DNA of 64,000 nucleotides from Bugula neritina (lineage: Eukaryota > Animalia > Bryozoa), in assembly GCA_964035545.1 (NCBI GenBank), contig OZ037767.1, positions 22,460,628 to 22,524,627 of the forward strand. Reading direction: 5' to 3'. A model generated the notes under the pieces. The model did not search any database. It had not been told where the DNA came from and worked only from the letters and a program-made list of their open reading frames with translations. Position numbers and translations under genes: made by a program. Positions 54,532 to 62,740 of the stretch are shown here, piece after piece. Within the stretch, counting starts at the first letter, position 1. The number at the start of each line of letters is the position of its first letter.

Positions 54532-56922
54532 ATGGACAGCAAAGATCTGAAGGTAAATTAGTTGAAACAGCCGTTATATGCAAAGAATATTTCAACTATG
54601 TATACTATATAGTCTTGCAGTTGCTTGAATAAATGATATCATTTTATCCTATGCTGCATGCATTAATTTAGCACTGTAGAATTTCAATTTTAAGAATCTA
54701 GTTCAAAATTTGCTGGCATATGATAATTTATGCAACTTAAAAATTTACAATTATGTTCATTCAGCATGAAGAAAATAAATCTAAAGTGACAGGCAGATGG
54801 CAGGTGCTTGCTATGATTACTCTCATACTGGCAGTTCTACTGACAACTACTGTGGGTGTTATCATGTATATAGCCTTAAATCCTACAACTGGTTGTACTC
54901 AAAAAGTGACAGGACCCCCTGACTATGAAGAGACGATTCACGTGGTGAGTACAAATATTTAACATTCTCTATTCTTCTACAATGAACATTTACGTCATAC
55001 CACAGCATTTACTCATTGTATATAATATTATTACTATTATAATTATTATGTATCATTTATTCTGGACTTAGTCTTTATATATGCACTTAATCTTAATAAG
55101 TTAGCTTTAGACTAATCAACATTTATAGATTATTCTGTTATAACCCAACATTTAATGTTTCAGACCAACAAACCTGATGTACAACTGGCATTCAACAGCA
55201 AAGAAAATATTGCAATTTTAACCACTACAGATGGAGGTTTTGATCTGGAAGATTATGGAAAGGTAAAACCTTTAGCACTCAGTATTGTGATCTATATATT
55301 TGATATAGATATAATTGATCAATATTTGATAGATATAGCTTTGTTAATTAGTGCATTTGATTTATTATTTATGATAAAGGCACGAATCACAATGTTTGCT
55401 TGAATACACTTCATTTGCTGCTGCATTTCTAAATTTGAACTAGCTACATAGATGGCAAAATTTCTTTCAAACTAAAAATTTTTTAAGTCATGTTTCAAAA
55501 GCATCTTACAGCAGTATAAAAATGCAAATTTTTCATTTGATTTGATTTTTAAAAATTCAAAAAAGATCTAAAATGTTTTTCTTACAATTATTAAAAAAAT
55601 ATCAATAAAAGTCCATCACTCTAGTCCTAGTGGGTTAATCCATCTGGTGATGAAAGGCTTAGGATTTGTTTTCTATTGTGACTAATGTTCACTAATCCAG
55701 TGCTCAAACTATTAGATCACAACTGTTACCTAGAAAAGTCAATTCTAAATAATTAGTAAATTACATGCCTAATTATAAGAATAATGTACCATTTTAGTAA
55801 CTATGAAATTAAAGTTTTGAAAAATTGAGATAAGTTTTAGATCTAAGTTTAGGTATTCAAATAAAATAGGATAAAAAGTGTTTAAGCAAAGTGAGTAATT
55901 TTAATAGCTTAAGTTAAAAATGATTGCAACATGATAAAATAAAAGCAATACCAAAGACTATACAAAAAACTCTATGAAAGGTTTCTGTTGGTATATTTTA
56001 CTTGTATATATATTAAATAAACAGTGCTAGTAGTTATTTACAACTATGTATGTTTAGGGTATACACATAACCAAGGACACCAACTCTGGCATCTGTTACA
56101 TCCTACCATCCATAGTCTCTGCTGCTGATAGTCAAATACTCAGAAGACACTTCCAAGGTCAGCAGGTCAACGTGACAGCAGAATCTCACCTCACATCTGT
56201 GACTGTACATCCTGGGAAGGTCTCTGATACCAGTTTCATACCGACTGAGGCCAAGTCATTCTGCTTCAATGGCTACCAGTGGGTGACTATTTACCAAGAG
56301 ACAGCAAGCTCTAGTCATGGTAAGACATTTTTCTACTATTTTATTATGAGAGTTTAAATTATTTGCTCTGAAACAATGGCTTGCTTTGAAGTTCTATAAA
56401 AACAGAGCTCTGTTTTTTGAGCTCATTTGAAACCAATGCTTTTCAATACTTTAGGAGTTTTAACATAATGCAAGTAATGAACAATAGCATATATAAGCAC
56501 AAGTAAAATAAAATCAAGTTTAGTATATGCTATTTTTTTAGGAAAACAGGATAAGTGTTTTAAAGATGATTTCTTTTATAGAACTGTGGCTGTAATGAAA
56601 TATAACCAACATTGTAATTTCTTTTTCAAGAATATGTAATTGTTCTTTCTCATTAAATTGATAGATATATAATCATAAAAATATGATTTATGTTTTGGAA
56701 ACCCAAAAGTAGTATATATGCCTCAAGTTATAATATATTAAAATATGTAATTATGTATATACCCAAGTTTTCCTTTGTGTAAATGATGATTTATGTATGC
56801 TGAATACTTGTAAATGCTTATTGTTGATTTTACAACGTCTTCTCAATTTTGTAGAAATAGTGAAAAGAAGAATAAAGTGGCCTAAAATAACAATCACAAT
56901 AAAAATCACTATCAGGTTTTAA
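54532..56922 (+). CDS. BRICHOS-domain precursor, copy 1 (209 aa). Exons 54532-54552, 54765-54944, 55164-55262, 56058-56319, 56855-56922. C-terminal peptide RIKWPKITITIKITIRF
   Basis: Short N-tail, one hydrophobic signal anchor (VLAMITLILAVLLTTTVGVIMYIAL), BRICHOS pattern EDYGKGIHITKDTNSGICYI...KVSDTSFIPTEAKSFCFNGYQWV (conserved Asp and two Cys), then IVKR|R and a short C-terminal peptide. All junctions are GT-AG, in phase and conserved in copy 2. Confidence 0.85.
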
Positions 56923-57184
56923 TTCTACCTGTACTATTCTACCCTTACACTGCTGTGGGGAAAGCTACTTGGTTGACTGTAAAGCAGTAGTGGTTAGAGG
57001 GTGCAGTAGAGAAAAAACTGAGAAAAATTTTATGGTCATGTTGAAAATTTTTAAAGGATTGTTTTTTTAGAAACTTCAACAGCAATTTATTGAGAAAATT
57101 AAAGAATTTAGGCTATATATTTCAATTTCTGTACTACTGCATCTTGATATAAGCATTGTATATTGAGCATATTGTAGTTTTTAT

Positions 57185-57289
57185 ACATATATATATATAT
57201 ATATATATATATATATATATATATATATATATATATATATATATATATATATATATATATATATATATATATATATATATATATATATA
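57185..57289. repeat. (TA)n microsatellite just before the AATAAA of BRICHOS copy 1
   Basis: Directly visible. Absent at the equivalent position of copy 2 (~63005). Confidence 0.95.
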
Positions 57290-57731
57290 TTAAAATAAAC
57301 TAACTTATGTCTTTATGTAATGTGTATTATTGGTATCTAATTTCTTGTTGAAAACAGTACTGCACGCTGTGTAATGGTTTTCTTTTTTCTAAAATGATAA
57401 CAATTTCTTATGGAACAAGCTTTATGTGTTGTTAGCTGTTGATTATATTATTGCTTTTCAAGTTTTCTAAACCAACAGGCCTTTGTTTAATATTTGTTTA
57501 TTATAATAAAGAAATCTTCAAGTAAAAAAATGTATTATAAAACCAGCCATTTAGGAAGATATTGAATAGATGACACAAGTGTTCCTGTTATGTTTAACTC
57601 AATGTTCATAACTATTGCACACATTCAGAATTTAAAGAATCTTTGACATGCTAGGTTTATATTGTAATAAATTAATCACATATATTTTGGCTGTCAGCTA
57701 GTTGTTGCTTCAAACATAGTATGCCTTAGCG

Positions 57732-60189: not shown

Positions 60190-60508
60190 TTAAGAGCCAA
60201 TAAAATTTCCCGGTTTTAGCGCTTTCCTTGTTAATGGCGGTACAAAATACTTGACTTTTTGAAGTCAAATTTGGAAGTTAATTGCCATAAATTATTAAAA
60301 TGTCTTGTAGAAAACACAGCCATATGATTGGCTAATAATTTATATACTTGTACATCTCTAATTGTTTGCTTCCTGAAAAACACATCTGGAACATTTATAT
60401 TACATCACAAGCTTCCTGTTATATTTTGGATATACAGATTTATACGAATCACTCAAACACTATAAGGAAGTGTCTGTTAAACTTTCAAAATTCTGAGCAT
60501 ATATAAAG
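60190..60508 (+). promoter_or_regulatory. Putative promoter of BRICHOS gene 2 (TATA 60500-60507, ETS-core motifs)
   Basis: Near-identical to 54140-54431. Confidence 0.6.
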
Positions 60509-60608
60509 CAGCACACACAAGTATTCTAAACACAGACATCTACAACCACACCGGCCGGAGACACATTTACTAGCATTTTCTATCAAGAACAGAGCTGAAG
60601 TCTAAAAC

Positions 60609-62740
60609 ATGGACAGCAAAGATCTGAAGGTAAATTAGTTGAAACAGCCGTTATATGCAAAGAATATTTCAACTATGTATACTATATAGTCTCGCAGTTG
60701 CTCGAATAAATGATATCATATTTTATCGTATGCTGCATGCATTAATTTAGCACTGTAAAATTTTAATTTTAAGAATCTAGTTCAAAATTTGCTGGCATAT
60801 GATAATCTATGTAGTTTATAAACTTGCAATTGTGTTCATTCAGCATGAAGAAAATAAATCTAAAGTGACAGGCAGATGGCAGGTGCTTGCTATGATTACT
60901 CTCATACTGGCAGTTCTACTGACAACTACTGTAGGTGTCATCATGTATATAGCCTTAAATCCTACAACTGGCTGTACTCAAAAAGTGACAGGACCCCCTG
61001 ACTATGAGGAGACGATTCACATGGTGAGTACAATCATTTAACATTCTCTATTCTTCTACATAAACATGCATGTCATACCACAGCATTTACTCATTGTATA
61101 TAATATTATTACTGCTATAACTGATATTTCACATATTCTAGATTTAGGGCTTTTATATGCACTTAATCTTAATAAGTGAGCTTTAGACTAATCAACATTT
61201 ATAGATTACTCTGTTATAACCCAACATTTCATGTTTCAGACCAACAAACCTGATGTACAACTGGCATTCAACAGCAAAGAAAATATTGAAGTTTTAACCA
61301 CTACAGATGGAGGTTTTGATCTGGAAGATTATGGAAAGGTAAAGCCTTTAGCATTCAGCATTTTGATCTATACTTGACGGTTGAGTGATCCAGGCATATA
61401 GATAGATAGCTTGGTTAATTAGTGGAATCTTCAGTAGCAAAATACTGCATTTAATTTATTATTTATGATAAAAATATGCATCACAATGTTTGTTTGAATA
61501 CATTTCATTTGCTGCTGCATTTCTAGCTTATAACTAGCTAGATGGTAAAATTTATTTCTAAATAACTTTTTTTAAAGTTATGTTTCAAAATCATCTTACA
61601 GCAGTATAAAAATGCAAATTTATCATTTGATTTGATTTTTAAAAATTGAAAAAAGATTCAAAATTTTTTTTACAATCATTAAGAAAATATTAATAAAAGT
61701 CCATCACTCTAGTCCTAGTGGGTTAATCCATCCGGTGATGAAAGACTTAGGATTTGTTTTCTATTGTGACTAATGTTTACTAATCCAGTGCTCTAACTGT
61801 TAGATCACAAATGTTCCCTAGAAAAGTCAATTCTAAATAATTAGTAAATTACAAGTCTAATTATAAAAATAATGTACCATTTTAGTAACTATGAAATTAA
61901 AGTTTTGAGAAATTGATATAAGTTTTAGATCTAAGTTTAGGTATTCAAATAAAATAGGATAAAAAGTGTTCAAGCAAAGTGAGTAATTTTAATAGCTCAA
62001 GTTAAAAATAATTGCAATGATACAATAAAAGCAATACCAAAGACTATAAAAAAACTCTATGAAAGGTTTCTGTTGGTATATTTTACTTATATATATATTA
62101 AATAAACAGTGCTAGTAGTTATATACGACTGTATATGTTTAGGGTATACACATAACCAAGGACACCAACTCTGGCATCTGTTACATCCTACCATCCATAG
62201 TCTCTGCTGCCGATAGTCAAATACTCAAAAGACACTTCCAAAGTCAGCAGGTCAACGTGACAGCAGAATCTCACCTCACATCTGTGACTGTGCATCCTGG
62301 GAAAGTCTCTGATACCAGTTTCATACCGACTGAGGCCAAGTCATTCTGCTTCAATGGCTACCAGTGGGTGACTATTTACCAAGAGACAGCAAGCTCTAGT
62401 CATGGTAAGACATTTTTAGTACTGTAATTCCTTTTTATAAAAATCTATTGTTCTTAGTCACTAAATTGTAAATTTATCATGAACATATTTAAACAATTGT
62501 TTATTCTTAAACATAGTGAAATATTTTAATATGATCACCCAAGTTACAGTATAAGAAAAATTGTAATACAACGTATACCTATAAGTTTTCTTTTGTGTAA
62601 ATGAGAATTTATGTACATTGAACGCTTGTAAAAATTTTATAGATCTTACTTTAAGTTTTCCAATTTTTGTAGAAATCGTGAAAAGAAGAATAAAGTGGCC
62701 TAAAATAAAAATCACGATAACAATCACTATCAGGTTTTAA
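60609..62740 (+). CDS. BRICHOS-domain precursor, copy 2 (209 aa). Exons 60609-60629, 60844-61023, 61240-61338, 62143-62404, 62673-62740. C-terminal peptide RIKWPKIKITITITIRF
   Basis: Same exon sizes as copy 1 (21/180/99/262/68 nt), intact frame, about 7 amino-acid differences. Confidence 0.85.

Follow-up and report, generated by a model that had tools for sequence, protein, structure and literature searches.

Defence peptides carried by BRICHOS precursors have been described from annelids (PMC10745061). The precursors of alvinellacin, capitellacin, and arenicin have a hydrophobic N-terminus, a linker, a BRICHOS domain, and a beta-prone peptide on the last exon (PMC4002450, PMC5431198), and polychaete-type precursors are defined by an N-terminal hydrophobic segment, BRICHOS, a dibasic site, and a short cationic C-terminal peptide (PMC10745061). 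We analyzed 64,000 nucleotides (nt) from Bugula neritina (GCA_964035545.1, contig OZ037767.1, positions 22,460,628 to 22,524,627; "the window" refers to this whole stretch) and found this layout in two tandem genes. We propose that they are bryozoan BRICHOS peptide-precursor genes and that a released 17-residue tail would act on microbial membranes as an antimicrobial; by analogy with known peptides, we put the probability of this reading at roughly 0.55.

Like the alvinellacin gene, the Bugula genes have phase-0 introns with a final one in phase 1, and they are tandem copies, in Bugula with probable exchange between paralogues like that in the polychaete genes (PMC4002450, PMC5431198). The comparison is one of intron phases, and there are four introns here instead of five. 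The alvinellacin, capitellacin, and arenicin genes have six exons, a signal peptide, and disulfide hairpins, while the Bugula genes have five exons, an anchor, and no cysteine in the peptide. The tails therefore fall outside the arenicin class of cysteine-closed hairpins (1-2 disulfides): they contain no cysteine and are modelled as a single strand. Also, the peptide is monomorphic in Alvinella, whereas in the Bugula family the diversity sits in the last exon.

HfBRI-20 and -23 from the polychaete Heteromastus filiformis are cysteine-free, alternating, cationic peptides from transmembrane BRICHOS precursors, and they are predicted to form hairpins with a central turn (PMC10745061, 2023). The same study describes two cysteine-free families, including the helical HfBRI-28, and activity was assayed for HfBRI-25 and -28 only. 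The Bugula precursors share the membrane-anchored BRICHOS domain, the K/R-R site, and a short cysteine-free cationic peptide with alternating beta-branched residues. They differ in coming from another phylum and in having a turn-less single strand instead of a hairpin; by eye, unaligned, the peptides look unrelated. An earlier note on this DNA had assumed that the polychaete BRICHOS peptides are all disulfide-bonded, which is out of date, and we reject the idea that the Bugula peptides are categorically new because they lack cysteine (PMC10745061). The "new family" that it suggested does hold for the sequence family and the host phylum, but the kind of peptide was already known from HfBRI-20 and -23. 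In the searchable literature, we found no paper on BRICHOS-carried defence peptides from bryozoans and none describing the B. neritina peptide. Within that literature, three things are new: the occurrence in a bryozoan, the single strand without a turn, and the range of cargos that one genome (~14 loci) carries.

The same order of parts (type II anchor, BRICHOS, convertase site, and short beta-prone peptide) is found in human ITM2B/Bri2 and OAF, and the folds are similar, with template-modelling (TM) scores of ~0.62-0.63. However, the sequence similarity to these proteins is marginal, and we do not imply orthology. Bri23, the peptide from Bri2, has a disulfide. For the peptide itself, the nearest comparison is with designed beta-strand amphiphiles, [IK]n and [IRIK]n, which are 8-12 residues long, membrane-active, and self-assembling (PMC8757834). 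These share the alternation of Ile with cationic residues, but the natural tail also has Thr at half of its polar positions and an RIKWP leader. Linear antimicrobial peptides with a beta-stranded form are uncommon in nature, according to the same review (PMC8757834).

The gene pair and its BRICHOS domain

As the earlier note claimed, both genes are intact, with five exons each, and exon-by-exon translation bears this out; both lie on the + strand. Every intron has GT-AG ends, and the phases are 0, 0, 0, and 1. Each coding sequence has 630 nt, encodes 209 amino acids, and has no internal stops; the two differ at 16 coding bases. In gene 1, exon 1 (54532..54552) encodes amino acids 1-7, the predicted cytosolic N-terminus, which is identical in gene 2 and in both annotated B. 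neritina copies (see below). Exon 2 (54765..54944, amino acids 8-67) encodes a putative type II signal anchor (54807-54863, amino acids 22-40, with a best 19-residue Kyte-Doolittle mean of 2.49) and a linker with one additional cysteine (amino acid 52). Exon 3 (55164..55262, amino acids 68-100) encodes the first strands of the BRICHOS sheet and the conserved Asp97 (55251-55253). Exon 4 (56058..56319, amino acids 101-187) encodes the BRICHOS core, with Cys113 (56094-56096) and Cys169 (56262-56264). Exon 5 (56855-56922, 68 nt) begins with (E)IVKR, a predicted dibasic convertase site (56855..56868), and the remainder (56869..56922) encodes the predicted mature 17-mer, RIKWPKITITIKITIRF, and the stop. 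Gene 2, also on the + strand, has exon 1 at 60609..60629, exon 2 with the signal anchor at 60844..61023, exon 3 at 61240..61338, exon 4 with the BRICHOS core at 62143..62404, and exon 5 at 62673..62740, which encodes (E)IVKR, the predicted mature 17-mer RIKWPKIKITITITIRF (62687-62737), and the stop. The tail had been described as having a last exon of its own; it is indeed there, but it shares that exon with the (E)IVKR site, which means that cargo and cleavage site move together.

There are TATA-like boxes about 110 nt 5' of gene 1 (TATATAAA) and about 110 nt 5' of gene 2, and AATAAA/ATTAAA hexamers 3' of both copies. The only sequencing run that we found as potential RNA support has reads that span the introns and contain no exon joints, so it behaves as DNA. 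About 1 kb 5' of gene 1 lies a near-perfect palindrome (53365-53577; 106-nt arms, 99% identity, 1-nt spacer) flanked by (TA)n tracts, which may be a real hairpin or an assembly artefact. Between the two genes is a short element (57733-58070) whose ends resemble hAT-type inverted termini by eye, although the repeat finder was silent; the stretch occurs in the annotated B. neritina genome as well.

That genome (GCA_010799875.2) contains the same tandem pair, EB796_003392 and EB796_003393, annotated as two proteins of the same length, 209 amino acids (KAF6038294.1 and KAF6038295.1). UniRef automatically names both "BRICHOS domain-containing protein." We consider them positional orthologues: their exons are 90-95% identical to ours in DNA, and the locus is syntenic with the window. 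Synteny of the neighbouring region with the B. neritina contig also rules out contamination. Because the non-coding DNA of the locus is only 82-88% identical, the sequences suggest that the window most likely belongs to a sibling or cryptic species of Bugula relative to GCA_010799875.2. A LicD/fukutin-like exon in the window (47838-48224, + strand; weak Pfam match, E = 0.0014) corresponds by synteny to the gene that lies upstream of the B. neritina pair.

The tails of the two orthologues read RIKWPKIKITIKITIKF and GIKWPKIKITITITINF. Across the four Bugula copies, all substitutions in the mature tail are at non-hydrophobic positions, and Ile, Trp, Pro, and Phe are invariant. In all four, the last exon agrees in its length of 68 nt, its phase, the KR, and the stop, with synonymous changes, while its flanks are only 72-89% identical. 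One orthologue has KR-G at the site, which implies that KR, and not RR, is the conserved site; KR is present in all four copies and in nearly all of the paralogous last exons that we read. Exons 2-4 are 96-99% identical within a genome, compared to 93-95% between positional orthologues, while intron 4 follows orthology (87-89% versus 77-79%). We read this, from four sequences only, as probable gene conversion of the scaffold that ends before the last exon.

To ask whether the domain is BRICHOS, we searched the genes of the window as separate exons and used two database orthologues, P0065 and P0068, as stand-ins for full-length tests. The Pfam family PF04089 has a gathering score of at least 25 bits. 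It had no match to the window genes exon by exon, and full-length P0068 scored 12.4 bits (E = 0.2), below the cut-off. Of the 38 family members, 12 have sub-threshold matches to PF04089 (the best with E = 2.8e-4), and it is the only Pfam family that recurs across the homologues. PF04089 gave no match in a search of the genome itself, in which the control was equally silent. We regard a single-exon Pfam match of CD59 to the signal anchor as spurious.

Other evidence favors the assignment. BRICHOS domains are characterized by one conserved Asp and two conserved Cys (PMC6265681), which correspond to Asp97, Cys113, and Cys169. Across 37 sequences Cys169 is invariant and Cys113 is at least 90% conserved; the Asp is invariant in the full-length homologues. 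The family profile aligns weakly with the human Bri2 BRICHOS domain (8rnu; E = 1.5) over the Asp and the first Cys. ESM Atlas features gave 0.92, with BRICHOS in 10 of the 10 best family matches. The AlphaFold 2 (AF2) model of the ectodomain of P0068 (residues 45-209; pLDDT [predicted local distance difference test] of 75 and predicted TM score of 0.72) is consistent with the BRICHOS fold, an antiparallel sheet with two helices. In an Atlas fold search with this model, the top three matches were all BRICHOS clusters (BRICHOS, ITM2, and OAF; TM 0.62-0.63, versus 0.45 or less for others), and these matches extend to residue 165 and hence include the tail. Foldseek found no match in the PDB with E < 0.001, and we rejected fold matches to LolA, polo-box, and ependymin as common sheet arrangements. 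The earlier BRICHOS call therefore fails at the profile cut-off that was suggested as its check, but the motif, the Atlas features, and the fold support a divergent BRICHOS domain.

Paralogues in Bryozoa

An exon 4 profile built on 11 paralogues was run against 1.84 billion representatives. Among the 46 matches, all with a named organism were from bryozoans (Watersipora subatra and Bugula neritina). The profile searches recovered no named non-bryozoan homologue, and hence no polychaete sequence or root for a tree. From these sequences, the family is expanded in the second bryozoan, W. subatra, whose uncharacterized RefSeq homologues (P0002, P0004, P0088, and P0089) have acidic or Cys/Tyr/Trp-rich cargos. 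One homologue with a four-cysteine tail is an intron-less contig from the Joint Genome Institute (JGI), and is probably a transcript. Another, P0031, carries the wrong JGI name FlaG.

In the genome that the window comes from, exon 4 has matches at 14 loci. Six further fragments, on C5 (8.13-8.37 Mb, L007-L012), contain stops; each copies the first half of the exon, and a repeated segment apparently carries them. The last exons vary widely, with four-cysteine hairpin, proline-rich, cationic, and neutral tails. At C2:12.25-12.29 Mb, five paralogues (L026-L029 and L035) have four-cysteine hairpin-type cargos; two are identical, with a charge of +7, and the others are acidic. One of these copies looks broken. 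These cargos are the closest look-alikes of capitellacin- or alvinellacin-type peptides. At C6:10.969-11.016 Mb (L023, L024, L025, and L036), R-X-R-R is followed by a variable peptide (Arg/Phe-rich, long Pro/Arg-rich, or another) and then by a conserved Ile-rich terminal strand; L025 has an apparent frameshift at the end of exon 4. At C2:29.41-29.42 Mb, one gene has two candidate last exons in tandem, whose alternating tails are weakly charged (L020:5840 and 6068), and L021 is an inverted partial copy. Both candidate exons are kept in B. neritina-type metagenome contigs (L049 and L050), and alternative splicing of the cargo is possible. L022, a closely related paralogue at C9:7.90 Mb, combines a frameshifted exon 4 with an Arg/Ile tail. 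In the unrooted tree of exon 4, cysteine-free and cysteine-containing cargos lie on opposite sides of one branch (support 94/88), which does not show the direction of change.

Proposed release and action of the tail

Both tails have 17 residues, a charge of +5, no Cys, and strict hydrophobic/polar alternation from K6 to F17, just as the earlier note stated. It also described the tail as an amphipathic beta-strand. This is true of the last 12 residues (2/924 = 0.002 for the 12-mer's composition) but not of the whole 17-mer (beta moment not significant, p ~0.2), because RIKWP at the N-terminus has the opposite register. The pattern alone is not rare, because alternating 12-mers also arise in the repeats of this AT-rich DNA (159/56,708 windows). 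The tail is real by position (acceptor, phase, KR, and stop) and by conservation in the two B. neritina orthologues, not by its pattern. PDB sequence searches found nothing significant; a match of the tail to Crov539 is a chance match of KWP. The tail has no turn motif, and in the model of P0068 it forms one 11-residue strand (model residues 154-164, pLDDT ~68 or lower). Because a DSSP strand requires a partner, this strand pairs with the domain in the model. In most models of human BRICHOS proteins, the mature peptide lies in the face-A groove (PMC9714404), and the Bugula tail may be bound in the groove as well.

Given its anchor, we suggest that the precursor is a type II membrane protein of the secretory pathway. 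In the lumen, the BRICHOS domain, with its Asp97 and a disulfide between Cys113 and Cys169, would hold the Ile-rich tail as one beta-strand and prevent its aggregation. The proregion (exons 2-4) has 12 K/R and 17 D/E, which roughly offsets the +5 tail. Cleavage after the conserved KR would free the 17-mer, presumably by a kexin/PC-type convertase, because IVKR lacks the P4 Arg of furin sites. The architecture with a convertase-released, beta-prone tail that had been proposed is thus supported by the conserved KR, the BRICHOS evidence, and the strand model, with the cleavage itself being predicted. The free peptide, as a natural counterpart of [IK]n and [IRIK]n, might then attach to the anionic membranes of microbes, take up its strand fold there, form sheets, and permeabilize the membranes, with a putative role in surface defence or control of the microbiome.

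We favor antimicrobial action because the sister cargos resemble classes of defence peptides, because the layout and intron phases match alvinellacin, and because synthetic [IK]4 is lethal to bacteria and Candida (PMC8757834). Several observations weigh against it. IVKR differs from the canonical furin site (R-X-K/R-R). The fold scores against solved BRICHOS structures in the PDB are modest (Z of 5.3 and 4.8), and LolA-like sheets score equally. Half of the positions on the polar face of the tail are Thr, one orthologous tail has a charge of only +3, and longer alternating KL-type peptides lose activity by pre-aggregation (PMC8757834). Also, the closest B. neritina paralogues have a ~80% identical scaffold with neutral or acidic Ile/Val tails (-1 and -2), which weakens a purely charge-based antimicrobial reading.

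The cysteine-free branch keeps beta-branched residues (Ile/Val/Thr), not charge (tails from -2 to +6), and a Thr-rich polar face would favor the stacking of sheets. By its composition and by analogy, the released peptide could be mainly a self-assembling structural or surface material, such as a functional amyloid (cross-beta fibrils with a function in vivo) located in cuticle or ectocyst, in adhesive, or in an antifouling film; until secretion, BRICHOS would keep it soluble, and charge would only tune its assembly. BRICHOS domains are anti-amyloid chaperones (PMC9714404), and alternating peptides self-assemble. But a small tandem pair with one short peptide per precursor does not look like a repetitive structural protein, and the sister paralogues resemble classic defence peptides, so we think a mainly structural role is unlikely. 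The two roles are not exclusive. Or the tail might chiefly serve for docking, as a strand that fills or completes the groove of BRICHOS, with the domain or the uncut precursor as the product. The domain or the uncut precursor was proposed to be the working product for gastrokine-like members. The paralogues on C6 keep a near-invariant C-terminal Ile-rich strand (DVEIIAIEV-like) after the variable peptide, the neutral P0064 tail likewise becomes a terminal strand in its AF2 model, and the scaffold exons are strongly conserved. However, the dibasic site is kept across the family, only the tail follows it in these genes, and a neutral docking strand would not need a Lys/Arg face. We have real doubts about this explanation.

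Bri2 and chondromodulin peptides are likewise released by convertases from type II precursors, and alternating cationic peptides can be haemolytic, so the peptide could be a secreted signal or an anti-predator or anti-settlement agent that acts on eukaryotic cells. This seems improbable: the tail has no amidation signal or receptor-type motif, and its amphipathicity is preserved rather than its exact polar residues. Finally, the last exon might be unused (a chance open reading frame in hexamer-like, AT-rich DNA), or the genes might be silent. The sole run, which covers the introns and lacks splice joints, would fit this, as would the chance occurrence of alternating 12-mers in the window. But all four copies keep an exon of 68 nt with one phase, the KR, and the stop, despite flanks of 72-89% identity and with synonymous changes, which an unused exon would hardly do; NCBI's models include the last exon; and the intron-less homologue is probably a transcript. 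We give this explanation very little credence.

The released 17-mers would be rare natural linear beta-strand amphiphiles, which are otherwise known mostly from design. More speculatively, Bugula may place natural single-strand [Ile-X]n amphiphiles on a reusable BRICHOS carrier whose scaffold is homogenized while the cargo diversifies, and these might form an antimicrobial or antifouling beta-sheet film over the colony or shape its bacterial symbionts. If that tentative picture is correct, this would be the first gene-encoded peptide defence family for Bryozoa. The ~14 Bugula loci with very different cargos are a testable natural peptide library from a fouling animal, and a single short strand on BRICHOS is a minimal natural client for studying how an anti-amyloid chaperone binds and releases its target.

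Other features of the window

On the + strand, 36542-39922 contains a LINE-like (long interspersed nuclear element) retrotransposon in several frames, with a match to RVT_1 at 38525-39319 (E = 9e-29) and, by eye, an endonuclease-like open reading frame upstream. The region at 4792-16328 on the - strand contains exons of a gene for a large C2H2 zinc-finger protein.

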